DNA from: Cyanophora paradoxa CCMP329
Taxonomy: Eukaryota > Plantae > Glaucophyta
Reading direction: 5' to 3'
Length of the DNA stretch: 64,000 bases
Assembly: GCA_004431415.1 (NCBI GenBank)
Contig: QPMI01000194.1
Span: 62,001 to 126,000, forward strand
Under the pieces are notes generated by a model that worked only from the letters and a program-made list of their open reading frames with translations, did no database searches and was not told the DNA's origin. The position numbers and the translations under genes are program-made. This document shows, one piece after another, positions 9,120 through 41,757 of the stretch. How positions within the stretch are numbered: position 1 is the stretch's first letter; the number at the start of each line of letters is the position of its first letter.

Positions 9120-10035
9120 TGAGACGGTCCCGTCCTGCGGAGGTGCGGAGGGGGGCGGAGGGGCGCCGCCGCCGGAAAGCGGGAGGCGGGGCGGGGCGGG
9201 GCGGGGCGGGCGGGCGGAGCGGGGCGGGCGGGGCGGGCGGGGCGGGGCGGGGCGGGGCGGGCGGGACAGAGCGTGGCGGGGCAGAGCGGGGCGGGGCGGG
9301 GTGGGGCGGGGCGGGGCGGGGCGCGGACATCGTGAGCGATGGCGAGGTGCCGCCCGTCATTGGGGAGGGCCAGACAGAGCCTGACCGCCTCCCTTCGAGG
9401 CCCGGCTGGGGCGGGCGGGGCAGGGCGGGGCGGAGACGGGGAGGGAAGGGGCGCACGCGGCCGTCGGCGTCGGCGAAGGCAAGGACGGCGCCGGAGGCGG
9501 CAAGGGCGATGCGGGCGCCGGAGGCCGGCGGGCCGTGCCCCGCGCCCACGCCCTCGTCCGAGAGCGCGTCCGGGCGAGCGGGCGAGCGGGGCGGGGCTCG
9601 CGTTGGTGGCGGCGACGACGCGGGACGCGGAAGCGCACTCACGGGTCCCGCGTACTCCTGCCGGTAGTCCACCTTCTGCAGGCACCGCTGCGAGTCTGCC
9701 CGCCCGGCCCGCGGAGCTCCGCTCGCTGCGCACTCACGGGTCCCGCGTACTCCTGCCGGTAGTCCACCTTCTGCAGGCACCGCTGCGAGTCTGCCCGCCC
9801 GGCCCGCGGAGCTCCGCTCGCTGCGCACTCACGGGTCCCGCGTACTCCTGCCGGTAGTCCACCTTCTGCAGGCACCGCTGCGAGTCTGCCCGCCCGGCCC
9901 GCGGAGCTCCGCTCGCTGCGCACTCACGGGTCCCGCGTACTCCTGCCGGTAGTCCACCTTCTGCAGGCACCGCTGCGAGTCTGCCCGCCCGGCCCGCGGA
10001 GCTCCGCTCGCTGCGCACTCGCGTTGTCACACCAT
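9120..10035 (-). CDS. Possible spliced WD40/beta-propeller-like gene fragment
   Basis: Exon-like peptides IALAASGAVLAFADADGRV and LCLALPNDGRHLAIAHD lie between GT-AG introns. The 3' part runs into the satellite. Confidence 0.35.
9635..10020. repeat. 95-bp tandem repeat x4 (53-nt exon-like + 42-nt intron-like unit on the minus strand)
   Basis: Units start at 9635, 9730, 9825 and 9920. The minus strand reads cag|ACTCGCAG...GGACCC|gtgagt. Confidence 0.95.
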
Positions 10036-17700: not shown

Positions 17701-19868
17701 AGAAACTGGTCTTAGCGGCAGTTGTCTGCTGTTGCATGAAATGGAACACTTACAAGAAAGCGAAAAAAGCGCACCGCTCGTCATACACCACGTCATTCAC
17801 ACTCTTCTCAATCCGACGATTTAAAACGATAGGCTGGAGAGAACGTCAGGGGGCTGCACTACAGATATGCTGCCAAACAATTATACCTTGACTATGTTAT
17901 CTGTGCAGGGTCATCAGTATGGAAGCCTCGGAATTCCAGACACGTGATTGAACATACCGGATTGATGGATGAGAAGTTGAAGAAGAGGTACAGGTGCGCC
18001 ACCAAGACATACGCTTTCGGAGAGAGCACGTGGAACAGCTGATGGAACAACAGCCTCGTGGGAATTCGATTCAGATTGCATGGGGCCAAGTGGCTGATCT
18101 GAACAAGAAGCACATAATCAGAAAAAAAGGTATTCAACAAGCTATGCTGCACAGACCATTTGCATGATCAGCCTCATCCGATTCCAGATCATCATTGTCC
18201 CCATCACCCTACGCAGCAGTCAGCACCGGATTCCCAGTACGGATAAGGTAGCATACCTCTTGCTGCCCGCGGGACTCACTCTCCTCGTCATCCTGTGAGC
18301 GATGCTCCTCAAACTCTAATTCGGCGTCGTGGTCTTTCAGTTCAATATCACCCTTGTCTGGAAACCTCTCAGTGCCGGCAAACAACGGAGAAAGCTCGCA
18401 GACCTTGATTAGTTTGACCACTGGACTGCTGCTGCCGGTACATATCACCATGCTCTTTGTCGAGGTTCTTCTTAACTGTCATGGACAGGCGCATCACATT
18501 CACTTGCTCACCCCCTGATTCCATGTCAGCACCCTGTGTAAATGCATCGACATTGAACCATACCAGGGTTGCCAACTCGTCCTTGAGGAGCAGGAGGAGA
18601 TACTGGCTCTCTAAGAACAGCATCTTCATCCCCGTTAATCTCTTCAGCTGGGGATCCGGAGGACAATGACGTAGGTTTGCCCCCTTTGTCAAGGGCAGAT
18701 TTTGCCGTAGGCTCCGGGAGCTGCCTCAGGTAGGCATCGAAAGCAGGTTGCTCAGGAATTGGAAGAGCAGCAAGCTTTTCTCTCCAAAATGCATGACTCC
18801 GAAGTTCCTGGGAACTCCTTCGGCGAATTGTCGGGCTCAAAATACGCAAAATCCAAACGAACCGTCCAATTGAACCGGCGAGCAGGGTGTTTTTGAAGCA
18901 GGCCCGCAATGAGATCGCCGAGTTCAGGAGACGCCCCCTCAATGGGCTGAAACTGTCCATACAGAATCTGATTCATAAGATCGGTGAAGCTATTGGAGAC
19001 GAATGGCGGCCTCCCAGTGGCCAACTCATATCTGCAGGTGTGATGAGGATGAAGTGCAACACTGCTGTGGGAAAAACACGCACAGGACACATCCTAGGGC
19101 CCAAAAATCTGAGCTGAAGTTGTGAACACCGTCGTCTTGGAAAAGCTCCGGTGCCATATAGCAGGGGGTGCCACGCTTGGGTTGTACTCCCTGCAGGTCC
19201 TCATCATTGAAACTTGAAGAACATTCGTAAAATATAGCCAAAACTAGGCACCTGAGAAGCTCCCGATCGAACTTCTGAGATGCTTTGTGCAAGGCCAAAG
19301 TCGCAAAGCTTAAGACAGCCATTTTCATCAATGAGCACATTGGATGGCTTCAGGTCACAGTAGATGATTCCACGGGAATGTATGAACCTGCCTCAATCTC
19401 AGTCACCTCTGAGAGCTTTTTTAGAAAAGTAAGAAACGCACTGGAGTCCGCAGAGCAAGTCCATTCCGAATGCATGCACTGTAGACTCCGGCAGGCGCTT
19501 GTCTTGCATAACGAGGTTCAGCAGGTCACCGCCGGTGCAGTACTCAACGATGAGCCAGATGTGGTTACTCGTCTCATACCAATTAAAGAATCGAAGTATA
19601 TTGGGGTGCACAAGGTTGTGGAGAATCCTCACCTGGGGTCCGATCAAGAATTCGCAATTAGTGAGCAGCAAACACTCGCCTCGTTCATAACTTTTTGCTT
19701 GTAGCTCTTCTCAACGCTCTTGATTGCAACATACTCGATGGTCTTCTTCTTCCGACCCTTGTACACGACGCTGTGCTTTCCGCGACCGATCTCTGCCGGG
19801 GCGCTCGCTCAGCCTCTGGCTTGGTGACCAGCGCTCAGCTAACCTTCATAGATGTTGTACTGGTTCAT
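14703..19868 (-). CDS. ULK4: ULK4/RUNKEL-family Ser/Thr kinase with C-terminal HEAT/ARM region (many exons)
   Basis: MNQYNIYE|[78 protein letters not shown] part includes LRAKALL and [13 protein letters not shown]. The 3' end is approximate. Confidence 0.93.
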
Positions 19869-22174: not shown

Positions 22175-22348
22175 GCTCGAAAGTGCGGTTGCACTTGCCT
22201 TTTTCGTGTGGATCACAATTTGAATAGTTCAAAGACTCGCAAAGCAACCATATTTCAAAGACTCGCAAAGCAACCCGCACGTGTAGTGCGTAGTCCACTA
22301 TGGGCGAACGCCAGGGTATAGTCGGCTGCTATGATCCCCTGTCGGCCG

Positions 22349-24139
22349 CTATGATGCCACTCGATACTTCTCTCGTGCCTCCAGGGAACCGTGTTTCGGC
22401 CGAGTCGTTGCGAGTTTCCTGATTGCGGTCTCAACGTAGGCATAAACGTTCGTCGGCAGATCCTTGAAATCTTGAGCACGAGACAGACAAGCGCGGGGAG
22501 GAGAGGAAGACACGATCGGAGGAGACGGAAGGAAAATGGAAGGGAACGCCACAACGGAAGCAGCTCCGCGTTTAGATGGTTGCGTCCTGTGCGGTGATGT
22601 AAGAAAGATCGCGGCATGGAGCCACAGCTTAAACCCGCCTGCAACTCCTCATGACGCTGGTATGAGAAAGCCTGACTTGAACCTGCTGCTTCACGGGCTA
22701 CGGCTGCGGGTGCACGGTTTTCCACGAGCTTCGGCTTGGCAGGCTCTTCGGCCTTCTTGAACCTGACCACTGTGTCACGGAAAACGACTGCTACCGAGAG
22801 AGAAGAGCGAGATACCAGATTTGATACAAGAGAGCTGTGATGCAGGCACCAAGGCACGGACCAACCCAGTAGACCCACTGCAGACACAAATGAAAAGGAA
22901 AGAAGCACGCCCCCATATCCCAACGCACATGATCCTCCCAAATGCCAGTCACAACTGGTGGGAAAACATTAGAAAACAAAATTTCAATCATGTGAGAAAG
23001 CGACGGGTACCTGCTGGGCCGAACGACCTCTGAACGCGCAACATTGAGCGGAAACAGAAACAGGAAGAAAGGAAGAAAGGCGAAAAAGGCAGACCGAGGG
23101 GTTGATGGATGATCCCGTGAAGGGCACACCGATGAGATGGCAGACGAAAACAGCCATTCCAACTACAAGAAAGGTGGGACACTGAGGCAAGTAAAATGAG
23201 AAAGATATGCTTTCGTACTTGCAAGCGGAGCAAGGGCATGGTGCATCTCGCCAACACGAGAAGAATCGATGGCAGAGAACACAGTGAAAAGAAGCACAGA
23301 TGTCAAAATGGCCTCCAACACGATGGCAGCGCCGAGATTCATATCAGAGGCTACAGTGGTGACGCCAAGAGTACCCTGCAGGGACTTCGGGAGGATGCCC
23401 TTGAGCACACCAGCGCCGACAACCGAGCCTGTGAGCTGAGCCAGAATGTACGCCGCTCCGCGTTGAAGAGTGACTTTCTTCGTGAACATGAAGCTGATGG
23501 TCACTGCAGAATTGATGTGCCCTCCAGACAGGTGGCCAATCGCAAAGACCTGCGCTTGAAGCTAGCTAAAAGAGGCACAAACAGTGGAGCAGGGCGCGCG
23601 CGCCAGAACCTGAAGACCGCAAGTCACTCCCACTGAATAGCAGGTTGGCGGGCACGCGCGTACTGTGATGCACATCCCGAAGGATAGCGAGATGACCAAC
23701 AGACGCGCATCACCGCCGGCGACGCGGGAGGCGGCAGTTAGATCCGCCTCGGAGACGACACTGTTGCTCGCGACAGCCGCGCCACAAGCGAGGAAGACTG
23801 CAGTCCCGCAACGATTACGCCGATACATCGAGTCGCAAGCGCACACGCAGCGCACCGAAGAGGGCAGAAGCGACGAATTCAGCTGTGACTGCTCGATAGA
23901 GAGACACGCTCTTGAACGCCGGCTGGTCATTCTCATCCTTCTCCACGACCTCGAACTACGAACTCATTCAGAACAGGGCGGAGAAAACCGCGGCTTGGCG
24001 CTGAGATTCTCACACCTTCAGAATGTTCTTCAGCTGCTCGTTCACTGCGTCGGGAAGGAAAGCGACTGCGAAAGGGTTTCGACTCGTACGGCCGCCGCGG
24101 CGCGAGGTCCGCGGGGCGCACGAATCTTTGGGCCGCCAT
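22349..24139 (-). CDS. Aquaporin / major intrinsic protein (spliced), with NSA and NPS boxes
   Basis: AEF helix 1, SGGHINSAVT, YILAQLTGSVVGAG, EAILT, HLIGVPFTGSSINPS|RSFGPA, WEDH|WVYWVGP. Confidence 0.93.
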
Positions 24140-24499
24140 CTTGGGCGGCGTTAAGCTCGTCCCGCTGAGCCATCTTCCCACAGCTGGCGTTCTCCCGAGT
24201 CCCGCCAACCCAGGGTACAAGTATACAAGCACAACCGTTTCGGTCTCGGATTGCATATTTTCCGTGTACTAGTACTCTCGAGCTCTAGATCTGGCCTATC
24301 ATCATGGCATATGCAGGGCGTTCTGATCATGGAGCTGCTGGTACGTATACGTATACATGCACGGAAGACAGTAATATTATTAATATTAATATTAAGAGCA
24401 CGAAGAAAGATAAGACAAAGAGCCAAAATCGACAATAAAAAAGAAAAGACACAGAGCTCGAGACAGATCGATATCGAGAAGAGACGATAAATCGAGCAG

Positions 24500-25245
24500 A
24501 TCTAGGGACAGAGGATGACTGACACGAAGAAGAGATGTCATCAGCCTCATCGTTGTTTTCATGATCAGTAAGCACGATTGGGGATCCTGGGTAAGCATGA
24601 TTGGGGATCCTGGGATATGGGTGGCAGAGAAGAGCCAGAAACGTTTTACAGAGACCTGAGGCAGGACAACCGTCACACGGCGTGACGTTGTCATCATGAT
24701 CAGCTTCAGGAGAGGATACATGGCCCCGCTTAGAAGAGGCAGCAGGAGGGATAATAGGATCAGTATCCATGCTAGGCCATAGGCATCAGGGACACAGCAG
24801 AAGCCTTGAAAGAGGAAGGGGCCAGGGGTGCAGCGAAGCCAGAGCTTGCGAAGTCATGCAGCTGCAGCCTGGCAGGTTGAACAGTAATCGCATCAGAAAA
24901 GAGCCGCAACAAATCAGGGTCAAGCTCAGCTTCATCCACATCAATGATGACCTGAGGAGAGGGAGAGAGAGAGATGAAGCAGAAGACACGCCCGTGGACC
25001 GGGTTGACAGGGTATAGCAGAGCCGCAGAGGCCCCTAGTGGGACATGCAAGGCACGCCAGGGATGCAAGGTGCGTACGCACCGCTTGGGACAGGGGCTAG
25101 CGCTGAAGGGCAGAGGCAAACTTGCATCATCAATATCAGCATGAAGAACGATGTGGTTTGCAATTGAAGCAGCAACCTCTAAATTACCAACACGGCGGCA
25201 TTGAAGAGGTGGCTCATCCTCGGAATCAAAATCCGGCGGCGGATG
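24500..25245 (-). repeat. Interspersed repeat family C, diverged copy
   Basis: PSPQVIIDVDEAELDP...MDTDP..PP...VSSP..LPQVSVKR matches the peptides at 47100-47530 and 11000-11420. Confidence 0.65.
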
Positions 25246-25249
25246 AGGT

Positions 25250-25524
<275 letters not shown>

Positions 25525-25875
25525 GCAAGCTCTACGGACGCACGCGGCTTTGGAGCTCACTTTTGTCGATGGAAGCAAGACAGCCTGGTCGCTGGATTGC
25601 TCAAGAAACAGGTTTGACAGGTTGGGCGTTTCAAACTGAACGGAGTTTGCGTCACGCCCCGCCCATTGTTAACTTCTTCCGCCAATGAAATTAGCCCAGC
25701 GCAAACTTGAGCTCGAACTTGGCCTCGTACACAGTGGCGTACACACGCGGCCACAACGGTCACAGTAACGGTCAGCAGGCCGGCTTGCTAGTCAGCTTCC
25801 CTCGGCTAGGCCGGACTAGCTAGCTTCCCGCCATCGCGCACGCCCGAGCGCGAGCATTCCTGCACGCCGCCGTGC

Positions 25876-27464
25876 ATGAAGCAGTCAAAGCGAAAGGAAC
25901 CCAGCCTCTGGGATGACGGCTTCGACGAGGCCCGACGTCGGCACCGCTGGCACGGCAAGCGACCCGACAGCAGCAGCTCGTGGGCCGGCAAGGGCAACAT
26001 GAAGCGTGTCAACAAGATCACTCAGCAGGCGCGCAAGGCGAAGGAGCCCAAGCTCCCTGACCTCGACATCCTCAAGGGCGAGCACCCCGCGGCAACGGTC
26101 CGCTGCCTGGACACCAGCGGCCGCGCCTACCACGTTCGCCTTGGCGACTTCGTCATCTGTTCAGTTAGCTCAGACACCCAGCTGTGTCCAGAACTCAGCG
26201 TCGTTCGCCCGAAGCCCTTCCATTTCCCGCGCCCAGGTGAAACGATTTTGGCGCGAGTCGAGGGCGAGTTCCCAACACAGACGAAGGCGAAGCGCGGCGA
26301 CTTCAACTACTCCGTCAACGGCGTCATCCTTCGGCGCTTCGTGCGCCCGGAGGACTCCGATGTGAAGGACTGCGGGCTCGGCAGCGTGATCATCAAGGCA
26401 GACGGGGAGCAGGCAGCCGTGGCCATCGCAAACCACCTCATCTACTACTCGAACGTGACGGTCCGCCCGCCGCGCCCGCGCCCCGTTCCAGCGTCCGATG
26501 CCCGTGCGCGCAGGTTCACGCACCCGCGAAGGTGGTGGCCGCGGACGAGTACAAAGCCCTCAACCACGCCGATCCCCACATCTACGTCTGTAAGCAAATC
26601 ATGACGTTCCCGGGCGACGGCTCCTTCCAGTTCGACGTCGCCCTCGCCTTCAACGCGAGGCTCAAGCGAGTGGCGAAGAAGAAGATGGCGTGCTTCCTCC
26701 GGCCGCTGTCGAGGCCGGAGGAGCGCGTGGAGGCGATTGGCTACCTTCAGGACGCCGCCGCGAACGCCCTCAAGCGCCGGAAGACCGGGACGCAGCTTGT
26801 CAACGTCAAGATCCCGGTGGCCGGGCCGGCAATGTTGGTCTGCGGCTCTTATGACTCGTTCGAAGTTCTTTTTCCTATCCTCTAACGGTGCGCATCGCAG
26901 GAGAACATCGTGGCGCAGGTCGCGCACGTCGCCACGCCCATCGACCCGAAGACGGGCCAGCCGATCCCGGTTGACAAGCTGCCGGCGGCGAATCGCTTCG
27001 TTATCGAGCTTCCGGACCGCGAGACCGCTGCTGGTGGAAGCCGCTTCCTTTTTCCCGCTCGCTGTTCTTTTTCCGACCTCTTTGCAGCTGTTCTCGGTCC
27101 CTCCGGCGTGGCGCAAGCGTCCAAGCGCGTCTGCAAGCGGGACGCGGACGGGAAGGCGATCCGGAAGCACAGCGAGATGCAGACCGTCACCGTCGAGAAG
27201 GCGTACGGCGGCTTAATCGTGCCGCGCCACACGGGCTCCCATGACGTCGTCCAGTTCGACGAGCGTGCGCCCGGCCCGCCCTCGCCGCGCCGCTCGCTTA
27301 CGAAGCTCTGCTCCTTGGGCGCGGCAGGTCCCGGTCGGATCGTGGCCACGAAGCGCTCGGGCAGGAAAGGTGGGCACGTCACGCTCGAGCTTCCGAGCTA
27401 CGAGTACGGCCCCGACGGCGAGCGCATCGCCAGCCTCGCGGGCCCCTCGCGGCTGTCCCCGTGA
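25876..27464 (+). CDS. BAH-domain-like protein (spliced), convergent partner of the transposase; may extend into an Ala/Pro-rich tail to ~27900
   Basis: YHVRLGDFVIC ... TILARVEG ... ILRRFVRPED ... LIYYSN ... AKVVAADEY ... DPHIYVCKQ follows the BAH consensus order (Y.vGD.V; iarI; wfyRPee; elf.s; c.V...ey; d.f.C). Confidence 0.65.
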
Positions 27465-27919
27465 AGCGCCCGCGCCGGTGCCGCGCCGGCGCCAACACCG
27501 TCGCCAAGGCGCCGCCTGTCCCCGAAGCAGCCCCTTCAGAACCTGCCGCCGCCGCCCTGCCGGCCCCCGCCGCCGCCGCCCTGCCGGCCCCCGCCGTCGC
27601 CGCCCCGCCGGCCCCCGCCGCCGCCGCCCTGCCGGCCGCCGCCGCCGCCGCCCCGCCCGCCCCCGCCCCGCCGGTCGCCGCCCTGTCGGCCCCTGCTGCT
27701 GCTGCCCCACCGGCCGCTGCCGCCCTACCTGCCCCCGCCGCATCCGCCTCGGTCCCCAAGTGCGCCCCCTCCCCCTCGCCCCCCGCTCGGCTACTTGCTC
27801 GCCTAATCCTGCAGCAGGAAGGATCGCGCGGCACAGCTCGCGGCCGCGGTGGCGGCGCGCAAGAGGGCAAAGTCGTGAAGCTGCTACTGAGAATCGCACT
27901 ATCTAGGTTACAAGGTGCG

Positions 27920-30900
27920 CTATGTCTGGTCCAAATCCATTTCGTCTATTTCCCCCTCCGCTAGATCGTCTGCTAGAACCTCTGCTAGGGCCCTATCATC
28001 GAAATCGAGCATGTTGGCGCCCTCATCCTCCGCCTCCATCTCCTCCTCCGCCTCCTCCTCTGCCTCGGCGTCGTACTCGGCGGTCTCCTCCTCCTCCTCC
28101 TCCTCGTCCCCGCTCTCCTCGGGCACCTCGTCCTCCGGCACCGGATCCCCCTCCTGCAGCTCAATATCCTCGTCGATCTCCTCCTCGTCCGCAGGCAGGG
28201 GCACCGCTGCCACCTCCTCGCCCCCGGCGGCGCCGCCGCCGCCCCTTCGCCCTGCATAGCCGCTGACCGGTGGGGACGGGCCGCAGGTCGGGGGATGAAG
28301 GGCCCATCTGGCCAGGCCTTGGCGGCGACGGGCGCGTCGTACTCGGCGTGGGCAGCGTCCTTCCCGCCGGCGCTCGCCTCCGTCATGTTCCGCATCCACA
28401 GCGCCAGGCGCCGCCGCTGGTGCGTCATGATCTGCTTGAGCATGTCGAGGTCCTTGTTCCACCCGCCACCGAGAGACGTGACGGTGTGTCGCAGGCGCCG
28501 AAGGAGGCCCATGTAGGACTCGATGACCTCGCAGCTCCAACGGCCGGGCGCGTTCGTGTTGTCGACGCGCGCCCAGAACGCGAGGTGCGCAAGCGTCGAG
28601 TGCATGTAGCGTGTGAAGATCTTCCATAACGGGAAGTGTGTCTCCATCAGGCCCTGGAGCTCGGCGACGGCCTCGATAACTTGCTGCCGCGCCTCCTCGT
28701 CGGGCTTCATGTTCCGCTCGTACTGGTAGATGATCTGGCGGAGCTGCCAAATCTCGTGCATGCCCCTCGTCTTCTCGCTCCAGCTCTCCTTACTGTCGCC
28801 GAAGCAGATGCTGAAGAGGGTGTCGGGCGCCTCGGGGTCCTCCAGGATCTTCTTGGCGGTGTTGGCGGAGATCTTCTGGAAGAACTTGTAGGTGGCCCCG
28901 TTCTCGGTCTTCTCGAACTTGATGTTCCGCGCGTATTTATCGCGAAGATGACGCTGCAGGTCTTCGATGCGCTTCTGCTGGTCCTCGGAGGCACCACAGG
29001 CGAGGGCGAGGAAGAAGTAGACGAAGAACCCGGCCACCCAGCTCTTGATGCCGTGCAGGGCGTCGTCGAGCCGGACCTGAGGTGCGCGTTGGCGTCCGCT
29101 GAGGCGAGGTGTCGCGGGCTTCTCACCTCGACGGCAGCGACGGGCAGCATGCTGTTCGGGAGCGGCTGCAGGAGGGCGTTGGCGTCGTGCTCGGGGTGCG
29201 GATTCTCTGTTCGCTGGCTGGAGGGAGGCCGTCCCGATCCCGCGGCCCTGCTGCGCGCACGACTTCGACCGCCGAGCACTCGGACCTGCAGTAACGTGAG
29301 CCCCATGCCGAATCTCAGCGCGTGTGACTCGGCGAACTGACCCGCGTCGGTGGACAGAATCGCAGTGCGGGCACAGGTCGAAGCCGAGGAGGACGCGGAG
29401 GAACTTGTAGTCGCCCGTCACCAAGAATTCGACCTCGACGGGCTTGTCGTGCTCGTACCCGGGGATCAGGGTGAGCGGGTTCTCGTTCAGGTACTCGACC
29501 ATGTCGGCGAGGGGCTTGATGCGTGGGCGCAGGTTCTCCTCGCTGTCGCTACCGCCGAAGAGCATTAGGGGCAGGAGGGCGTAGCAGCTCTGAACGCCCT
29601 TCAGCGGGTGGTACGCCTGCGTCCCGTCCTCCTCGATGACGTAGTAGCCGTCGACGATTGCCACGATGCAGGTCATGCCGTCGGTCGTGGAGACGCTCTT
29701 CCCGCGGAACGCGATCGTCCCGTCGCCCGCCAGGCGGACTCGAGGTCTGATCTTCTTCCCCCTGTGCTTGTGCAGCGGGACGAAAGCGCTGATGAGGGCC
29801 GACAGGGCGGGCGTCGGCGTGACAGCTCTGCGGGGCGGCGGCGCTGCCGCCTCTCCGCCCGCCGCCGGCGCTGCCGCCTCTCCGCCCGCCGCCGGCGCTG
29901 CGCTCGACGGAGGCACAAAGAGCTCGAGCATGACGCCCGGCTTGCCCTTGTTCTCCTCGTCGCCGACGCCCGCCGCTGTTTCGACGATCTGCACGATCTG
30001 CACCGCTCGGTGAGCCTCGTCCCTCACCCCCGCCCCGCGCGCGCGCGCCGCGCCTTCTCGAGGTCATCGTTGACCTTGCCCCGTAGCTTCGTGATGCAGT
30101 GCTTCGACGGGAGGAAGGCTCGCAGCCCCACGAAGTGCTTCTTCAGGGCCTTCTTGAGGAGCTTCGTGAACTCAAAGTACGTCGCCTGCCCCGGGTCGGT
30201 TTAGAACGGGATGGGGGGTTAAAACATTCGAGAAAGGGCGCACGTCCGAGATGCAGTGGCGGTCCTTCCACTCTAGAATCTCGCAGTCGGGGAAGGTGTC
30301 CCGCAGCTTCCTGCAGGCGATGCTCATCGCCTTCTTCACTTGCAGCTGACCCGATTTGCTCGTTTCCAGGGCTCGTTGGGCCTGCGGACGGTGGTTCAGA
30401 AAGGTGCTCTTCTCCAACGATTTTGTAGCCTATTAAAGTACGATTCTCGGTAGCTCTTTTTATGTATAATAACGCGCACTGCGTGTGGCCCGATGATGCT
30501 CACGAGGCGGCGTGCCTCCGCCTCCAGCGCCTCCCTCCTCTTCTGATAGGCGCCCTCCTCCTCTCCTTTGTTCCTGGGGCGCCCTGGATAAGCATGCATA
30601 TGCCTGCGCGCGCGCCGCCCCGCCTTGTACCTCGCGAAGTTCTTTTTAAACATGGGGAGGCGGATCTGGATGTCCGGACTCGCAGCGTTTAGAATCGTCG
30701 AGAGCAGCATGCGGAGGAACCGCGTGCGCCGCTGCCTGGACGTATCCGAGCATCCCTTCCCAGGGACCTGCCTAGCTATGCGCGAGATGGTCGCTGCACG
30801 CTGTGCCGAAGTCCGCGGGACCTTGGCGCGCTTCGACTGGTGCTCCTCCCTAAGCTTCTTGTTCTCCGCCTCAAGCACTGCGATGCGCTCGTCGCGCGCT

Positions 30901-31500
30901 TTGAGCGTCGCCTTGCGGACGATCCGCTCCTCAGGCGGCACATCTTCCTTGCCGCGAGCGCGTTTCGGGGCGGTGCCGGGGCCGGGGGCCGGCCGCGGCG
31001 CCGGGCTCGGCGCCTCATTAAGAACTGCATTCGTCTGCTCGCGGCCGGGCAGAGAGCATACACTCGTAAGCGCGGGCAAGTCAAGTCATGACATCGAATT
31101 TGAATGAGCGGCATACCACGTCGGCGCCGAACGCGCGACGACCGCGCTGCTGCTGCTGCTCTGGGCTAATCTGAGGCGATTGCGGGCTCGCTGGAGCCGA
31201 TGGCGACCCGGGTGGCGAAGCTGGAGGGCTCTGCAGGATGCACTGGAGGAACACAGCCACTGCGGTGGCCTCTTGAAGCGCCGCCGTGCAAGCTAAGCTA
31301 TGCGGATACAATGGAGACGCAATGCCGCGCGCCTCCAGTTCCAGGTGGGCGTTTCGGCTGTGGGTGAGCACTGCGATGATCCGCATAAGCGCCTGGTACG
31401 CGACCGACGCGTCCGCCATCTCTAAAACGACTGCTGCGGGCGCTGGAAACGTTTGGGGCGCGGGCTGGGCCGCGGGACGGGGCGCGATGGGTCGCTGCAT
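27920..31500 (-). CDS. RAG1/Transib-like DDE transposase (spliced; acidic C-terminal tail in a shifted frame)
   Basis: Ordered motifs ISD|ATYFEF..LPSKHCI, LAGDG (D ~29723), LLPLMLFGGSDSEENL, VTGDYKFL (D ~29411), CPHC, DDALHG, SANTAKKIL, TRYMHSTLAH, GRWSCEVIES (E ~28520), DMLKQ. Confidence 0.85.
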
Positions 31501-31902
31501 CGCGCGGGCGGGTTCAAAACTCGGAAAAAAAGATCGCGTGTACCTCCCCTGCCATCTGCGGAAGCGGCAGCTCCGAGCGCCGCGAGCAAGCATACACATC
31601 CGCGACAGTTAGGCGCCGAAGAGCAGCAGGCGAGCCCAGCATGCGCGATAATGCGCAATTGCGATGCATAGCTACCTTAGGCGAAGCGGCTGGTCCACCC
31701 GCGCGGTCCTTGCCGGCCGCGATGCTCGCTCGTCGATATGGGTATGACGCGCTAAGCAAGGGGAGCATGCCCAGACTGGGTACGCAAACTGCTGAACGTC
31801 CAACTCCAGCTGAACGCCCTGCAGCTGGTGGGCCTGAAGCAGCCTCAAGCGTTAGCTATGTCGCATCGACAGTGTAGCTATGTTAGCTGTGGAGCGAAGC
31901 AT

Positions 31903-32633
31903 ATGCCCGCTGACTACGTGTCCGAGGAGGAGGACCAGGAGGAGACCATCAACGCGCCGTGCAATCGCCCAATGACTTCGTCTGTCATCGAGATCAACAG
32001 CAGCGACTCGGAGAGCGATGGACCAGCGGCAGCGCGCCGAGCGCAGGGCGCGCATGAAGGCGGACGAGGAGCGCGCGCTCGAGGAGGAGGATGAGATCAG
32101 GCGGCGCCACCAGGCAGCTTTGGAGGTCAACCTCGCAATAGAGCGCGACTCGGTGAGGCCATACAAGCTGGCCGAGCTCAAGCAGTTGCTGGAGTACGCG
32201 CGCGCGTGGATGCGCGAGCACGAGCAGCTGTACGAGCAGTTCGAGGTCGCGCTGGCGCACAACAACCTCCTCGAGGCCATTAACCTGCGGTCGGAGATCC
32301 GCAAGCACCGCAGCACGGCGCGCTTCTGCGGGCAGGACCCCCTCGGGCTCTACGAGGAGGCGGCCTTCAAGCCTCTCTATGACAACGTGACGGCCTTGCA
32401 GCGGCGGGCGGGCAGATGGAGCATTTCGGCGACAATCTCTTCAAGTGCGCGGAGCACTTCCAGCGGGTGCGCATCCGGCAGCAGCAGGCGGCGGCGGCGG
32501 CGGCGGCGGAGGCGGCGGAGGCGGCGGCGGAGGCGGACGGGGCTGCTGCTGCTGCTCGGTGCAAGCGCCGCCGCCTGCGTCGCGGCGACGGCGTGCTCGT
32601 CTCGCGGCCGGACGATGCCGACGACGAAGCGTA
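31903..32633 (+). CDS. Orphan helical protein inside the element, divergent from the transposase (frameshifted or spliced)
   Basis: Protein-like, GC3-rich segments RMKADEERALEEEDEIRRRHQ...PLYDNV and QMEHFGDNLFKCAEHFQR, joined across frames. Confidence 0.45.
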
Positions 32634-32639
32634 GCGCCG

Positions 32640-32925
32640 TTAGCCGCCCCCGCCCCGCCGTTAGCCGCCCCCGCCCCGCCGGCCCCCGCCCCCGCCCCGC
32701 CGGCCCCCGCCCCGCCCCGCCGGCCCCCGCCCCCGCCCCGCCCCGCCCCCGCCCCGCCCCGCCCCGCCCCGCCCCCGCCCCGCCCCCGCCCCGCCCCGCC
32801 CCGCCCCGCCCCCGCCCCGCCGCCCCGCCCCGCCCCGCCCGCCCCCGCCCCGCCCCGCCCCGCCCCGCCGGCCCCCGCCCCCGCCCCGCCGGCCCCCGCC
32901 CCCGCCCCGCCGGTCGCCGCCCTGC
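32640..32925. repeat. (CCCCG)-type low-complexity tract flanked by a ~34-bp direct duplication
   Basis: ggcgacggcgt(g/c)ctcgtctcgcggccggacgatg at ~32584 and ~32927. Confidence 0.85.
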
Positions 32926-34455
32926 CGGCGACGGCGTCCTCGTCTCGCGGCCGGACGATGTCTGCAGCTAGAGTCACCAGCTGCAGTCTGCACCTGGCTT
33001 GAATACGACAGATTTACTAGTTATTCTGCTATCGTGCGCGCACCGTGGCACCGTGGCACCGTGGCACTCAGTGACTACCGAGAGTGGCGGGCGGGCTGGC
33101 GGGGCGGGCTGACAGGGCGGGCGCCTGGCGGGACAGTCGGGGGCCTCCGGGACACTCTGGCAGTCCGGGGCCTCGGGAGCCTATTTTCGCGCCATACAAG
33201 GCCTCCCCCGACCCTGCAGCTGCATAGGAGGCCTTATATAGTGCTTTAAAAAGGTTCTCTAAGCTTTTTTCGATGTCTCCCAGCTCCTGGGGCGATGGGC
33301 CCAATTTGGAAGGGCCAAAAGTCAGCAGAAGACTAGCTGTAACGTAGTGTATAGGCGTATGATGAGTCATATGGTATGACGGGTTAAATGGGCCCATCGC
33401 GGGGGCTTTGTGCAGGGCACTAAATAACGCCGTGTGACGCCTCTACATCTTGAATAAAAAGTTCTAATCAAGATACGAGGCTGCCGTGCTTCAATCGCAA
33501 GCCTCGGAGTGCAGATTCCCTGGCAGATCAAAAATTGCGAACGCGATACCGGGGGTCGCCGCGCGCTCGCAGCCTTGCGAAACCTTGAGAGCGGATAAGA
33601 TTGCCGCCGACAGCGAGCCCAGCTCCCCGCTCGCAGTGCAGCCGCGCGCTTAAGGCGCCGGCCAGCCACTTGGCCCCGGCTGCAGCTGCTCCGGCACGGG
33701 CGGCCTCAGCCAGCCGGCACCATGCTATCGCAGCTTCAGCCATGAGCCTCGGAGAGGGCGGAAGTCTCCGAGGCTCGGTCCGCGATCCAGGGCAGGCGTG
33801 CGTATGTTCCAAGTTCGCGGGCGAGGGCGTGCGCCTCGCCGAATCGTTGTCGCGGCGTGCGCCTCGCCAGGTGTACTACAGTGCCACAGTGCCACGTTGT
33901 CGAAAGCGCGAGCCGCTCAGTCAGCCGAGTTTCCTCCGCTGGCCAACCGGGTACGCATACGCCCGGCCCGGCCCGGCATGCCACGAGAGCGCCCGCGGCG
34001 CTTCACGCGGTCTTCCTTCATCTCCGTGACCCGCTTCTGCGAGACGAGGTCGGTGGGGCAGCGGCTGCTTGCCGCAGTGCATGGATTGCCAGCCCCAGGT
34101 GCGAGGCCTTGACTCATCCCGAGCTTCCCGAGCAGATTACCAGGCGCGCCGGCGTAGCTCAGCGCCGATTGGGTCTGGCACGGTCCGCCTTTGCGGCCGA
34201 CCCCGGTTCCGTGCCCAAGCCGTTCCGACCTTCCCGAGCAGATTACCAGGCGCGCCGGGCGCACCTAGCTCAGCGTCGCCGAGCTTATAGGCTAGGCTTG
34301 CTCGGAGGCTCCGGATGCACGCACAGTTAGCCAACCCAGCCGCGCCCCGCGTCCCCGCCCGGCTGTCGTGTGGGCGACGCATGCGCAAAAGGAACACAAA
34401 TTTTTCTCATCCGATGAGAGCTCTAGCTATGCAGGACGAAGCGAGCGGGCCGGGG

Positions 34456-36208
34456 CTAGCGCCCGATGGCGGGCGCCTCGAAAGGCGACGTCTCCGGCGG
34501 CACAGCAGCGTGTAGCTGCTGGACCGCGGCGACCCACCCTGCGACCCTAGGCCCCCGGGGTTCCCGCATGAGCACGTCCCTCATGTAGAGATACTCGATA
34601 ACGGCCTCCAGCTCCTCCACCTCCTTTATGTACATGCGCTCCTCCTTCCGCCACACCTTCGCCTCACGCTCCAACTCCAAGTCCCAATTCCTCTTCATCC
34701 TTGAGACCTGCGCCGCGCCGCGTTACGCGCCAGCGGGCGCACGCACGCGTGTGGGCAATCGCGGACCTTGTTTTCCAAGTCATCCACCTTCGTCTGCAGC
34801 GCAGCGTTCTGGTTCTGCAGCTCCTCGCACTCCTCTTCGAGGTTTTTGACCCGAGTCGCTCTCTGCGGGCGCCGGAGGGACCGCCGTCAGCAGCGCATTG
34901 CGGGCGCCGGCGGCGCGGGCGGCGCGGCGGCCGGCGGGCTCACCAGACTGGCGTTGAGCTGCATCATCTCCTTCTCCAGCTGAGCGATCTTCTCCTCCCG
35001 TTGAGCGATCTGCCGCTGCTTCTCCCTGTTGGCCCACCGCAGATCAGGGAGCTCCCGCTCCAGGGAGCTGCACTTCTGTTGGAGCTCCTCACGCTGCGCC
35101 GGTGCACGGAGGAACACGTCGACTTTCGCCTTCAGTTGATTGGCGAGCTCCGCGCCAGTTAGACCCTTGTCTAGGACATCCTGCGGCCCGAATCAGCGAG
35201 GCAAGCTGCGGGCGAAGCGCACGGCGGCGTGAAACGGCGCGCGCACACGCTGCTGAAGGTACTCGATCGCTTCAAGGAGCTTGGACGCCATGCGAACCGC
35301 ATCGGAAACCCGCTTGCAGCCGGTGAGCCTCCGATAGAGTGCGGCGTCCTCCTCCTCGATGCGAAAGCGGTGCCGCCCGGGCTTGTCCCAGGGGGTGAAT
35401 CGATCTTCCTCCTCGCCCGTCATCTCGACATCGCACTTGCGCCGCTTGCACTGCTGCTTGGTGGACGTGGCGGGCTTCTTCGGGCTGGCTTCTTCGCGGC
35501 TGAGCTGGCAGGCGACGGCGCGACAGAGGGATCGTCCATATACCGCTCCATGGCAACGAAGGGATCCTCATATTGCTCGCTCGGTGCCGCCGCGGGCGAA
35601 GGCTGGGAGGTCGCCGCCGCTGCCCGCTTGCGACTCACGCGCTTAGGCATGTCCACGGGGGTCGCTGGCGAGGCCGCTGCCGCCGGCGGCTGCGTGCGTG
35701 GAGGCGTGGCCGGCTGATCATGCGAAGGCTGCGATTGCGAGGGCGCAGCTACTACCCGCTTGCGACGCGGGCGATCAGGCGTGTACACGGGGTCGCTGAT
35801 GAGGCAGCTGCGACAGGCGGCGTACACGGCTGTACAGGCGTACCCCCCCCAAAGGCGTCCCTGGCGTCTCACAGCAGCCGCTGCCGGGCTCTGCTCGAGC
35901 TCTGAGCGTACTGGCGAGACTTGTGGGGAGTCGCTCCCGCCCGCCGGCTCCGCCGCGGGAGGCGCCAGCGCGACCGCGGCCGTCGCATGCGCAGCTGGCG
36001 CTGCATGCGCAGGCTGAACGACTTGCTCGCTCAAAGCTGCGTCGCCAAAGTCGTCTGGATTCACGTCCTCGCCGAGGTCGTCCTGGCTGCCGCAGGTGCT
36101 GCCGCCAATCTGGCCGTGCCGCGGCCTGCCATCGCTGGCGCCGCCCAGCCACGCTCTAATGGAACCGAACGCTGAGCCGACCTTGGCAGACAGCACAGAG
36201 AGCGGCAT
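34456..36208 (-). CDS. Orphan coiled-coil protein inside the element (spliced)
   Basis: Disordered N-terminus, then heptad exons QREELQQKCSSLERELPDL..AQLEKEMMQLN, KNLEEECEELQNQNAALQTKVDDLENK, DLELEREAK..EVEELEAVIEYL. Confidence 0.55.
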
Positions 36209-36523
36209 CTCGATCGCCGAACGCTAAGCTATAAGCGCTTTTGCTTTTCCCGCGCAAGTCCGTGGCTGGCCGCAATCTAGCTGCAGCTGGCCGTGGCTTG
36301 GAAGGGGGGGAGATGGCTTGGGGGGATATAGAATTTGGTCTAGCCAGCTCGAACTCGAACTCAGCCGGCTGATAGCCGCCGTGACACGGCCGTGTTCAAA
36401 ATTCAAATTCCATCCATTGTTAAAGCTCGCGAACTAGCGGGATGTCCAAAAGGTCGCGCCGTTTTCGGCCCGTCGAGGTCCGTCCGGGGCCGTCTGCGAC
36501 ATGCGAAACAGCTCCTTACGGGG

Positions 36524-39500
36524 TCTCGGGTTCGAATCCAACACCCCAAAATTTAGGGGGGGAATGAACCACCACCACAGACGTGACTCAGTGAATATAG
36601 AAGACTTGGGTCCTTAGTTGCAAGCAACTAAGGTACCCAAGTCTGATAACTATTCCTGCCCCCGGGGGGCAGTACAGACTTGGGTTTCAGAGAGCACGGT
36701 TAAGTGAGTGCGCACTGTGCACATTAGCTCTGTTTGCAAGCTTTTCGGAACGGCTTGATCGAGCCGATTCTGGGGTACGCGTTTGTCGGTGACGGCTACG
36801 GCCAGCTCCAAGAATGGCTAGCACCTCAACGCTTTGCTGCTGAGCGTGCCATCGTGCCCGCTTCGATGCACCCTGTAACTGGCTTGAAAACCGGAACAGC
36901 GCGCGCGCTCCCTGAGGAGCAGGAGACGATTGCATGTTTGTATGGGAACTTTGCGATCTTTGCAACCAGGCTACCTGCCGTCACGCTCGCTTCTAAAATG
37001 GATGCGCGTAGCTGCATAACGGACTTTCTTCTCAGGAAGCAAGCCCGCGCGGTCGCTGGATTGCCGGAAAAACACGATTGCATGTTTGTATGGGAGCTTC
37101 AAAGGCTTCTCGATCTCGGCAACCAGGCAACCTGTCGTCGCGTTTGCAAGCCCACCGGATGCGCGCGGCTTTGGATCTCACTTTTGTTCATGGAAGCAAG
37201 AGAGCGCGGTTGCTGGATTGCTCAGGAAACAGGTTTGACAGTTTGGGTAACGGGTTCGGGGTAACTTAGGGGGGGAATGAACCACCACCATAGACGTGAA
37301 TATCGGCCTTGGGGAAAGGAGAGGCCCTTAGGTCTGTGCCTATCTTGTGGCAAACTTCAACTTGATTTTATAGACAAACTTTTTGACCTAGGTACCCATT
37401 TTCGACCCTAGGGAGCACGATGGCGGCGCTACTTTTCAAATGTGACACCTCTAACAAGCACTAACAGCACGTACGAACGAAATTGTTCGCGTTAAGCCCG
37501 ATCGCCATTGGCACAAAAAGTCAATTCACCCATTCACGGACAAGCACGATTGTCATTGGTTCCAGCTTGCTTCCCCTTCGCCGATGGAAATTGCAAAGAG
37601 CCTCTGTACCCGGCTGGAAGGCTGGAGTCACTAGGCGCTTCGCCGGCAGAATCGCCGCGCGTCGCTTTGCAAATAAACGATCGCGATCAACGATCGATCA
37701 AGCGCTAGCGCTATCGCTCCGGCGCCGACGTGATCGTGATCGATCGCCGCGACCGTCGGAAGCCGGCGCGCGCCGGCCGCGCCAGGCCTAGGCGCGCCGC
37801 CGGCGCCAGCAGGCGCCGCTACTACATAGCTATCGCTGGCGCTAGCTAGACCAAGCTAGAAGATTCTAGCTATAGGCGGCATAGTCCTCTCAACAGTAAC
37901 CGCGCGCGGTTGCGGGACCTCGTTTTAAAACAAAGAGCGGCCACCCTCACGTCTTGAAACCCCAAGACCCAAGGCCACTCCTGCTCCGCAGGGACTCGCT
38001 TGTAGAAGACTTGGGTCCTTAGTAAACTAAGGAACCCAAGTCTGATATAGAAGACTTGGGTCCTTAGTTGCAAGCAACTAAGGTACCCAAGTCGACGTCT
38101 GATAACTATTCCTGCCCCCGGGGGGCAGTACAGACTTGGGTTTCAGAGAGCACGGTTAAGTGAGTGCGCACTGTGCACATTAGCTCTGCAGCTGTTTGCA
38201 AGCTTTTCGGAACGGCTTGATCGAGCCGATTCTGGGGTACGCGTTTCTCGGTGACGGCTACGGCCAGCTCCAAGAATGGCTAGCACCTCAACGCTTTGCT
38301 GCTGAGCGTGCCATCGTGCCCGCTTCGATGCACCCTGTAACTGGCTTGAAAACCGGAACAGCGCGCGCGCTCCCTGAGGAGCAGGAGACGATTGCATGTT
38401 TGTATGGGAACTTTGCGATCTTTGCAACCAGGCTACCTGCCGTCACGCTCGCTTCTAAAATGGATGCGCGTAGCTGCATAACGGACTTTCTTCTCAGGAA
38501 GCAAGCCCGCGCGGTCGCTGGATTGCCGGAAAAACACGATTGCATGTTTGTATGGGAGCTTCAAAGGCTTCTCGATCTCGGCAACCAGGCAACCTGTCGT
38601 CGCGTTTGCAAGCCCACCGGATGCGCGCGGCTTTGGATCTCACTTTTGTTCATGGAAGCAAGAGAGCGCGGTTGCTGGATTGCTCAGGAAACAGGTTTGA
38701 CAGTTTGGGTAACGGGTTCGGGGTAACTTAGGGGGGGAATGAACCACCACCATAGACGTGAATATCGGCCTTGGGAAAGGAGAGGCCCTTAGGTCTGTGC
38801 CTATCTTGTGGCAAACTTCAACTTGATTTTATAGACAAACTTTTTGACCTAGGTACCCATTTTCGACCCTAGGGAGCACGATGGCGGCGCTACTTTTCAA
38901 ATGTGACACCTCTAACAAGCACTAACAGCACGTACGAACGAAATTGTTCGCGTTAAGCCCGATCGCCATTGGCACAAAAAGTCAATTCACCCATTCACGG
39001 ACAAGCACGATTGTCATTGGTTCCAGCTTGCTTCCCCTTCGCCGATGGAAATTGCAAAGAGCCTCTGTACCCGGCTGGAAGGCTGGAGTCACTAGGCGCT
39101 TCGCCGGCAGAATCGCCGCGCGTCGCTTTGCAAATAAACGATCGCGATCAACGATCGATCAAGCGCTAGCGCTATCGCTCCGGCGCCGACGTGATCGTGA
39201 TCGATCGCCGCGACCGTCGGAAGCCGGCGCGCGCCGGCCGCGCCAGGCCTAGGCGCGCCGCCGGCGCCAGCAGGCGCCGCTACTACATAGCTATCGCTGG
39301 CGCTAGCTAGACCAAGCTAGAAGATTCTAGCTATAGGCGGCATAGTCCTCTCAACAGTAACCGCGCGCGGTTGCGGGACCTCGTTTTAAAACAAAGAGCG
39401 GCCACCCTCACGTCTTGAAACCCCAAGACCCAAGGCCACTCCTGCTCCGCAGGGACTCGCTTGTAGAAGACTTGGGTCCTTAGTAAACTAAGGAACCCAA

Positions 39501-40970
39501 GTCTGATATAGAAGACTTGGGTCCTTAGTTGCAAGCAACTAAGGTACCCAAGTCGACGTCTGATAACTATTCCTGCCCCCGGGGGGCAGTACAGACTTGG
39601 GTTTCAGAGAGCACGGTTAAGTGAGTGCGCACTGTGCACATTAGCTCTGCAGCTGTTTGCAAGCTTTTCGGAACGGCTTGATCGAGCCGATTCTGGGGTA
39701 CGCGTTTCTCGGTGACGGCTACGGCCAGCTCCAAGAATGGCTAGCACCTCAACGCTTTGCTGCTGAGCATGCCATCGTGCCCGCTTCGATGCACCCTGTA
39801 ACTGGCTTGAAAACCGGAACAGCGCGCGCGCTCCCTGAGGAGCAGGAGACGATTGCATGTTTGTATGGGAACTTTGCGATCTTGGCAACCAGGCTACCTG
39901 CCGTCACGCTCGCTTCTAAAATGGATGCGCGTAGCTGCATAACGGACTTTCTTCTCAGCAAGCAAGCCCGCGCGGTCGCTGGATTGCCGGGAAAACACGA
40001 TTGCATGTTTGTATGGGAGCTTCAAAGGCTTCTCGATCTCGGCAACCAGGCAACCTGTCGTCGCGTTTGCAAGCCCACCGGATGCGCGCGGCTTTGGATC
40101 TCACTTTTGTTCATGGAAGCAAGAGAGCGCGGTTGCTGGATTGCTCAGGAAACAGGTTTGACAGTTTGGGTAACGGGTTCGAATCCAACACCCCGAAACT
40201 TAGGGGGGGAATGAACCACCACCATAGATAACTATTCCTGCCCCCAGGGGGCAGTACAGACTTGGGTTTCAGAGAGCACGGTTGCGTGAGTGCGCACTGT
40301 GCGCCTATCTCTGTACATGTTTGCAAGCTTTTCGGAACAGCTTTATCGAGCCGACTTTGGGGTACATGTTTCCTGGTGACGGCTACGGCCAGCTCCAAGA
40401 ATGGCTCGCACCTTAACGCCATGCTGCTGAGCATGCCATCTTGCCCGCTTCGATGCACCCTGCAACTGGTTTGAAAACCGGAACCGCGCGCGCGCTCCCT
40501 GAGGAGCAGGAGACGATTGCATGTTTGTATGGGAACCTTGCGATCTTGGCAACCAGGCTACCTGCCGTCGCGCTAGCTTCTAAAACGGATGCGCTTTGCT
40601 GCATAGCGGACTTTCTTCTCAGGAATTCGAAGCAAGCCAGCGCGGTCGCCGGATTGCCCGGAAAACACGATTGTGCGTTTGTATGGGAGCTTTGAAGGCT
40701 TCTAGATCTCGATATCGATCGATATCTCGGCAACCAAGCTATCTGCCGTCGCGTTTGGAAGCTCAACGGACGCGCGCAGCTTTGGAGCTCACTTTTGTCG
40801 ATGGAAGCAAGAGAGCGCGGTTGCTGGATTGCTCAGGAAACAGGTTTGACAGGTTGGGTCACGGGTTCGAATCCAATACCCTGGAACTTAGGGGGGGAAT
40901 GAACCACCACCAAACTTGTGAACATAGAAGACTTGGGTCCTTTTTTAGTAAACTAAGGAACCCAAGTCTG
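36524..40970. repeat. ~1.46-kb head-to-tail tandem repeat (2 full near-identical units plus 2 partial/diverged) with hairpin motifs
   Basis: Identical spurious ORFs recur at offsets of 1461-1462 (36734/38196/39657). Palindrome agacttgggtccttagt..actaagg(a/t)acccaagtct at unit junctions. Confidence 0.95.
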
Positions 40971-41757
40971 GGCCGTTTCCCGCAGTCGCCGATTTGTATG
41001 CATATGGGAGCGGGCTTATGTAAGGCTTACGTAGCTAAAACGTTGGCTGGATTAACTCCCGCGGATGTAAGCTACGAGCTTAGGAGGGCCTTTCCTTCTA
41101 GTGAGGCAGCCAATGAGCTGCCAGTGTCGGTGCGTGCCGCTTCACTACGATATAGGGCTGGGTTCAGTGGAGCCCCCGGGTCCACTCAGTCAGTGGACAT
41201 TTTGCGTCGAACTCACTCATGATCAGTGACTACCAGTGAGTGGGGGGTACGTGCTCTTTTACACGAAAAAGGACCAAAAACGACCTAAATCTCGCTGAGC
41301 TTCAAGGCACTACGTGCCTAAACTGTTTCCACCGTAATTCCACGGGCTTTCGATATGTTTAGAGGTCATTTGCAACGCAGGCCATTGTCATAATTGCAGT
41401 GCTTCTCGACGTTGCACACCCTTCGCGCCGCGGCCTGCGCGCGGCACTCCGACGTTAAGTACCCACACCGACGTTAAATAGCTAGGTGGCGGATGGGTCC
41501 TAATTTTTTGGCGCCGGATACCCCCCCACGCAGCGCTGGCTGAGGTCCGGCTCACTGGCCTCAAACATTTTTCTTTGTGCGAGTGGGCCAAAATCTCCAC
41601 CCTCGACCCTCCACTGGTTTCACTGGACCCAGCCCTACTACGATATCGGACCGGAGTGAGCGGCACCCACATGTACACGACACATCATACTTTGGCCATC
41701 ATAGTTTTTTCCACCAGCTAATTTTCACTACGTAGCTGGCGACTGCGGGAAACGGCC
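40971..41757. mobile_element. Non-autonomous MITE, PIF/Harbinger-like (20-bp TIR, 3-bp CTG TSD)
   Basis: TIRs ggccgtttcccgcagtcgcc (40971-40990) and ggcgactgcgggaaacggcc (41738-41757). ctg on both sides; the empty site aagtctga is present in sister repeats. Confidence 0.9.

Follow-up and report, generated by a model that had tools for sequence, protein, structure and literature searches.

A probable multi-gene DNA transposon copy in Cyanophora paradoxa, with a RAG1-like transposase core and a convergent orphan partner

How transposases of the CMCT clade (see below) pick up second proteins, the step that created RAG1-RAG2, is a question for which a convergent gene pair in the glaucophyte alga Cyanophora paradoxa offers a natural test case. 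The pair lies in a 64,000-nt stretch of GC-rich nuclear DNA (here the window, whose numbering is used throughout), with a + strand gene that opens at 25876, termed the partner, running towards a − strand gene for a DDE transposase. A sequence-only reading had proposed that the two constitute a RAG-like transposon whose transposase recruited a BAH chromatin reader, and that interpretation is now partly supported. The explanation given most weight, with a probability of roughly 0.7, is that the locus is a copy of a multi-gene DNA transposon having a DDE transposase with a CMCT-type core, an orphan partner gene that is convergent and mobile with it, and antisense RNA covering the transposase.

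The insertion and its convergent gene pair

Both genes are inside an element of 10,894 bp, delimited by comparison of its flanks and by contig boundaries, and the supposition of a single insertion holding the two has been borne out. The element splits a single repeat unit, one half of which forms the left flank (25527-25626) and the other the right flank (from 36521); intact copies of the unit are present at 37146, 38608, 40069 and 40759, all to the right of the element and in the same window. To the left of 25626 the RNA contigs of two runs have letters that differ from each other, and a DNA contig piece begins at 25628; this divergence at 25626 is the appearance expected of a repeat boundary. 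When the two flanks are aligned with the intact unit, which reads ..GGTTGGGTCACGGG.., the left junction falls between ..GGTTGGG and CGTTTC, and the right junction between CTTACG and GGGTCTCGGG.

25627..36520, no strand: whole mobile element, with termini CGTTTCAAAC.. and ..CTCCTTACG, splitting a repeat unit
25624..25626, no strand: putative target duplication, left copy GGG, from the flank alignment to the intact unit
36521..36523, no strand: putative target duplication, right copy GGG, from the same alignment

Judged against the intact repeat unit, the target duplication at this copy is 0-3 bp (GGG at most), and one of 5 bp is excluded. Comparison of 24300-25900 with 35900-37400 yielded no terminal inverted repeats beyond CGT/ACG, the other matches being merely chance 8-14-mers. 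The occurrence of CCATTGTTAA near both ends was considered and dropped, as its common presence there is within chance expectation.

The partner was proposed as a spliced gene and proves to be one, with five exons and four GT..AG introns on the + strand (53, 63, 54 and 63 nt) in contigs assembled from three RNA-type runs (X15, X17 and X18) that derive from three studies.

25627..26460, + strand: partner exon 1, 5′ untranslated region and then coding sequence from the ATG at 25876 (aa 1-195); RNA contigs of X15, X17 and X18
26514..26837, + strand: partner exon 2 (aa 196-303); RNA contigs
26901..27033, + strand: partner exon 3; RNA contigs
27088..27264, + strand: partner exon 4; RNA contigs
27328..27964, + strand: partner exon 5, Ala/Pro-rich tail; RNA contigs, with a donor at 27914 also used

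In the window as given, the partner open reading frame (ORF) stops at 27462. However, the window is without three single letters that are present in a DNA run and in all three RNA-type runs, namely a G after 27439, a C after 28220 and a G after 29192, and two of the three shift the partner and transposase ORFs. Most likely the missing letters are residual indel errors of a long-read assembly or mutations private to this copy. With the G after 27439 restored, the partner stop is at 27962-27964 and the product has 618 aa; where, in addition, the splice from 27914 to 28287 is used, the ORF continues to 28514 and the product has 653 aa. The form that reads unspliced past 27914 is also present in the RNA contigs. 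Translations of the partner exons match the gene model P0014 (tig00000663_g3004) exactly, premature end of the window sequence included, and P0014 is probably a model made on this very contig. From the RNA contigs the partner is strongly transcribed and correctly spliced.

The transposase gene runs in the opposite direction. Its exons are predicted, from tblastn of the paralogue models P0003, P0021 and P0005 on the window (31419-27923) together with ORFs, and the sense splicing is likewise a prediction.

27920..31419, − strand: transposase gene, about 890-970 aa in paralogue models, about 8 predicted exons, with an acidic C-terminal tail and its stop at 27920-27922

That a + strand gene converges here on a − strand DDE transposase gene, with its DDE, CxxC and HxxxxH motifs, therefore stands as first described. 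The 3′ ends had been placed as meeting within ~27460-27920. While the convergence holds, the meeting point does not, with the transposase stop (27920-27922) and the partner stop (27962-27964) so disposed that the coding ends overlap by a few dozen bases, in 27920-27964.

The transposase core and its relatives

The motifs on which the comparison with RAG1 depends are in an ORF at 27985-30027 (− strand). Their assignment follows the motif layout, to which, for the histidine pair, is added agreement in register with the structure alignment to 6cg0_A.

29719..29736, − strand: RLAGDG, first catalytic Asp, counterpart of RAG1 D600
29401..29421, − strand: VTGDYKF, second catalytic Asp, counterpart of RAG1 D708
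29362..29373, − strand: CPHC, CxxC zinc ligands, counterpart of RAG1 C727/C730
28585..28602, − strand: HSTLAH, HxxxxH zinc ligands, counterpart of RAG1 H937/H942
28516..28533, − strand: CEVIES, catalytic Glu, counterpart of RAG1 E962

The resulting spacing, D-104-D-13-CxxC-219-HxxxxH-22-E with the second Asp and the Glu separated by 262 aa, may be set beside that of mouse RAG1, D600-108-D708-19-C727xxC730-207-H937xxxxH942-20-E962. In a search by ESM features the nearest named clusters are those of vertebrate RAG1 (score 0.94, 185 of 256 features), with unnamed plant, arthropod and cnidarian clusters alongside. Foldseek ranks mouse RAG1 (6cg0_A) first among 350,542 chains of the PDB, at E 0.13, probability 0.87 and 23% identity, and VIA-align has three RAG1 chains at the top (149 residues, identity up to 24%), with model residues 334-502 lying on RAG1 792-952 and the HxxxxH on H937/H942. 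From sequence and models together, a transposase that is RAG1-like at the level of layout and nearest neighbours is supported.

The hallmarks of ProtoRAG/RAGL elements are the gene pair RAG1L and RAG2L, bipartite inverted ends that resemble recombination signal sequences (RSS) and start with CAC, and a 5-bp duplication, with AanRAGL of Aureococcus anophagefferens as an algal example; relatives of RAG1/Transib have been described in animals, plants, fungi and bacteria as well as in one pelagophyte alga (PMC9435367, Tao et al. 2022). The Cyanophora element shares with these the D..D..CxxC..HxxxxH..E core and the presence of a second gene that is inside the element and convergent, as in ProtoRAG, and with AanRAGL it shares a host that is a unicellular alga. 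It differs in that its partner is not a Kelch/PHD RAG2L, its ends are without RSS-like bipartite repeats, its duplication is at most 3 bp rather than 5 bp, its transposase is below HMMER detection in comparison with RAG1, and its 10.9 kb accommodate at least 4 genes. Transib, of 3-4 kb, encodes the transposase alone, has RSS-like inverted ends and 5-bp duplications, and shares with RAG1 the hallmark of a long distance from D to E (PMC1131882, Kapitonov and Jurka 2005). Here the catalytic layout is again similar, the second Asp and the Glu being 262 aa apart in Cyanophora as against 206-214 in Transib and 253 in RAG1, whereas size (10.9 kb), gene number (at least 4), duplication (at most 3 bp) and the lack of inverted ends set the Cyanophora element apart. 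Because of that short duplication and the lack of RSS-like inverted ends, it is neither a ProtoRAG/RAGL element nor a canonical Transib. What thus survives of the proposed RAG-like two-gene transposon is the RAG1-like core and the linked convergent partner; the 5-bp duplication and the RSS-like ends do not.

The broader CMCT (CACTA-Mirage-Chapaev-Transib) clade comprises EnSpm/CACTA, Mirage, Chapaev, Plavaka, ESTA, Lanisha and Transib, and has C(2)C and H(3-4)H motifs in common, duplications of 2-5 bp, mostly 5′-CA..TG-3′ termini and frequent extra genes (TET/JBP in fungi); within it, the ESTA lineage matches RAG1 by profile methods only, namely HHpred (PMC12730594, Kojima 2025). The Cyanophora element resembles clade members in that CPHC and HSTLAH come after the Asp of VTGDYKF and before the Glu of CEVIES, and in being large and multi-gene; its duplication, of up to 3 bp at the one copy whose ends were compared, would fit. 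In contrast, its termini are not CA..TG, no similarity to known accessory genes is present, and its partner is on the opposite strand and convergent. Since the RAG1-type motifs are common to the whole clade and the element fails on the features of Transib and RAGL, it is filed as a new CMCT lineage with a RAG1-like core. In this lineage such a core occurs together with ends that are atypical, a duplication that is short, and an orphan partner that is expressed and strictly linked. A literature search found no publication linking Cyanophora and Transib.

The alternative that survives best is also within the clade, and is possible if somewhat unlikely. By it the transposase would be EnSpm/CACTA- or Chapaev-like (CMC) and not a relative of RAG1/Transib, and the second gene would reflect a CMC habit, whether TnpA-like, in the manner of TnpA beside TnpD in maize En/Spm, or cargo such as TET/JBP. 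To our knowledge the PDB holds no CMC transposase, in which case any member of the clade would find its best PDB match in RAG1. The duplication of at most 3 bp is as in EnSpm and not 5 bp, and consistent with the same alternative are the clade's duplications of 2-5 bp, the accessory genes in several of its lineages and the HHpred match of ESTA also to RAG1 (PMC12730594). Nevertheless, the nearest named ESM clusters are RAG1 and not CACTA families, the transposase has no Pfam match to plant CACTA transposase families, and the termini are neither CACTA nor CA..TG.

The partner protein

The partner has a basic N-terminus, resembling a nuclear localization signal, followed by a strand-rich region and the Ala/Pro-rich tail, with exon 1 covering that N-terminus and the beginning of the strand-rich region, which is BAH-like. 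Across exons 1 and 2 the eye finds the order GDFV .. RFVRPEDS .. YYSN .. YVC in the ~170-aa strand-rich region, which we take to resemble the hallmarks of BAH domains. The order reported as seen is accordingly present, without statistical support for membership of the family. As judged by eye, the Trp of the BAH 'WFYRPE', which we take to be a cage residue in histone-reading BAH domains, is an Arg in the partner.

Searches were made with the exons singly and, for the joined form, with the database gene models P0014 and P0012, which hold exons 1-3 exactly. No Pfam match to BAH (PF01426) was obtained at E<=10 with single exons, P0014, P0012 or P0014:60-260, HMMER's filters being such as to hide matches weaker than about E 0.1-0.3. 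For P0014 and P0012 there was likewise no Pfam match at E<=10 to the Kelch, PHD or RAG2 families. Phmmer against the PDB gave chance rows alone and no BAH chain; among 1.84 billion representatives phmmer retrieved Cyanophora copies and no relatives from elsewhere (P0011 was rejected as a low-complexity match); and the ESM Atlas feature search with exon 1 had no usable match. An AlphaFold2 model of P0014:60-300 has a predicted local distance difference test score (pLDDT) of 36, and the Foldseek rows obtained with it are meaningless, none being BAH. A RAG2-like identity is excluded, there being no Kelch, PHD or RAG2 signal and the structured N-terminal region being too short for a six-bladed propeller. 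Compared with BAH proteins (PF01426), then, the likeness is in the order and spacing of four short motifs seen by eye, while profile, sequence and fold matches are lacking and the usual cage Trp position is an Arg. The BAH identity proposed for the partner is thus unsupported by Pfam, by either phmmer search or by the fold model. The partner is an orphan protein of 618-653 aa that is part of the mobile unit and not a host gene.

This bears directly on whether the locus is an independent RAG-like two-protein system, in which the partner, as a BAH reader, would bind to the transposase and direct or license its cutting in the way that RAG2 does with RAG1. The tail-to-tail layout, as in ProtoRAG, the strictness of the linkage across copies, the expression of the partner, its basic N-terminus of nuclear localization type and the BAH-resembling motif order (by eye) would all accord with such a system. 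It is nonetheless unlikely given that BAH was found neither in Pfam (E<=10, joined model P0014) nor by phmmer in the PDB, that the partner has no relatives outside Cyanophora among the representatives searched and no usable ESM match, that its fold model is unusable, and that an Arg presumably replaces the usual cage Trp. The most far-reaching version, with a RAG1-like transposase having independently acquired a BAH-like chromatin-binding partner that acts as RAG2 does, a convergent layout that doubles as an antisense brake, and hence a second origin of a two-protein RAG-type system, is a long shot. Any part that the partner protein might play in targeting or cutting is hypothetical. Should the partner turn out to be a chromatin reader that cooperates with the transposase, a culturable alga would allow tests of how RAG2-type licensing arose; otherwise the element would be one more multi-gene member of the CMCT clade.

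Antisense RNA, linkage and neighbouring sequence

The explanation favoured, a multi-gene CMCT-type transposon with a convergent orphan partner, also includes an RNA component. A spliced RNA covers the transposase core, with ten internal joints and a further joint, from 27914 to 28287, that connects it to the partner's last exon. All of these are GT..AG on the + strand and within conserved transposase coding sequence, and because of this the RNA at 28287-30529 is antisense to the transposase.

28287..30529, + strand: spliced antisense RNA over the transposase core, 11 exons, GT..AG joints, in three RNA runs
28287-28419, 28495-28584, 28651-28891, 28960-29081, 29138-29295 and 29358-29470, + strand: antisense exons; RNA contigs
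29533-29610, 29672-29744, 29806-30009, 30087-30176 and 30370-~30529, + strand: antisense exons, continued; RNA contigs

The antisense RNA is not one ORF and its depth is similar to that of the partner, while over the 5′ third of the transposase gene (30530-31529) there is almost no RNA. On the simplest interpretation, transcription of the convergent partner gene reads through over the transposase core. The ten introns of the antisense RNA are short (56-193 nt) and canonical, and at least 9 introns would be downstream of the partner stop codon, a position that would normally mark an mRNA for nonsense-mediated decay.

In the working model, that of a multi-gene cut-and-paste element, the transposase, as the only recognisable enzyme of the element, would move it and the partner would supply an accessory protein. 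The splicing of the partner's last exon onward into the antisense exons would cover the transposase core with antisense RNA, and the convergent layout may, at least in part, keep transposase output low by that means. From this perspective the locus is also a natural test case for self-regulation of a convergent gene pair through antisense RNA.

A different emphasis would be to see in the partner 'gene' chiefly the 5′ portion of a long RNA with a regulatory function, with its ORF incidental and its sole role that of driving antisense transcription over the transposase. The splicing of the last partner exon into the antisense exons, the at least 9 introns that follow the stop codon, an arrangement seldom expected of a normal mRNA, and the similar depth over the partner and antisense parts are compatible with this. 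It is, however, improbable in view of a 618-aa ORF that is open across four introns with matching phases, of gene models for the same ORF on at least 21 contigs, and of the existence of the form unspliced past 27914.

Several points weigh against the transposon explanation as a whole, or limit how far it can be taken. The duplication length was deduced from one paralogous empty site and the ends examined are those of a single copy; these ends, without inverted repeats and CG..CG rather than CA..TG, are odd for a cut-and-paste element of the CMCT clade. No RAG1 or Transib similarity was found by HMMER, either with Pfam on ORFs and exons or with phmmer on the PDB using P0001 and two core exons. 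The AlphaFold2 model of the transposase core has a pLDDT of 37 and its structure matches are over ~150 mostly helical residues, with VIA-align Z scores of 9.1, 7.8 and 7.5 for the RAG1 chains when, for helical models, Z below ~13 can reflect a common arrangement. Near-identity of the copies leaves no sign of selection on the partner ORF. The RNA evidence all comes from assembled contigs, from which strand-specific depth cannot be read and which do not prove the partner mRNA and the antisense RNA to be a single molecule; the contigs are broken at the repeats at 27545-27780 and 28018-28118.

Linkage of the two genes is present in every copy that could be checked. Partner gene models are on at least 21 contigs and the element, of roughly 20 copies, is on at least 20. 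On 9 Cyanophora contigs the models of the transposase and the partner are numbered next to each other.

tig00000137: g8141/g8140
tig00021244: g19564/5
tig00000829: g4677/6
tig00021168: g19134/5
tig00021374: g21139/8
tig00021137: g19027/8
tig00000663: g3003/4 (this window)
tig00020531: g10065-6/g10064
tig00000331: g24160/59

The copies are nearly identical, exon 1 being the same in P0012, P0014 and P0016, and the element is young. Given this near-identity, the linkage shows that the partner belongs to the mobile unit, and does not show long-term selection. The sequence-only reading had allowed that copies lacking the partner, or a partner that was a single-copy host gene, would point to chance adjacency, and neither is what the 9 pairs and the at least 21 partner contigs show. 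That a host gene and a transposon came to be neighbours by chance can be dismissed because the pair is numbered adjacently on 9 contigs, with a partner that is multi-copy and with both genes inside the 10.9-kb insertion.

All protein relatives retrieved are EukProt EP00741 Cyanophora gene models, no transposase homologue having been retrieved from outside Cyanophora, and for neither protein was a related locus found in metagenome and viral contigs. Metagenome contig L001, reached via P0036, is unrelated and has no similarity to the window. A gene model from another contig, P0009, fuses a ketoacyl-synthase-like host protein to a partner copy through the 5′ untranslated region of the latter; here a further insertion is immediately downstream of a host gene, and the fusion reflects either read-in transcription or mis-annotation.

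Besides the transposase and the partner, the element carries a + strand ORF set and a − strand coiled-coil-like gene, giving at least 4 genes.

31828..32971, + strand: third ORF set, divergent from the transposase gene, acidic/Ser-rich, then coiled-coil-like, then Pro-rich
34456..36208, − strand: fourth gene, ORF pieces for a coiled-coil-like protein

In another copy, the gene model (P0002) joins the N-terminus of the fourth gene (35420-36208) to the transposase. No Pfam domain was found in the ORFs of the third and fourth genes, Pfam run on all ORFs, single exons and gene models having given no match of relevance, and the transposase is the only recognisable enzyme of the element.

The sequence into which the element is inserted has features of its own. 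A tandem array with a period of 1461 bp and at least 3 near-identical units occupies 36550-41000 of the window, with related sequence at 25527-25626. The array contains a ~170-nt unit with the tRNA T-arm-like GGTTCGAATCC, and it is a solitary copy of this unit in which the transposon is inserted; ARAGORN and Rfam scans of the flanking repeat detected no tRNA or RNA family. Directly to the left of the split repeat unit is a (GA)137 microsatellite at 25252-25523. Further left the DNA is lower in GC, and at 22255-23504 (− strand) has ORF pieces that by eye resemble an intron-rich host gene of aquaporin/MIP type, with kinase-like ORF pieces at 18750-19340 (− strand). Closer to the start of the window, a 40-bp tandem repeat of ~46 copies and ~88% GC at 7275-9105 is followed by a perfect 95-bp repeat, present four times, at 9633-10020. 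Fourteen separate DNA data sets of 2024 from the same organism (runs X1-X14) each have ~94% of the window's words.

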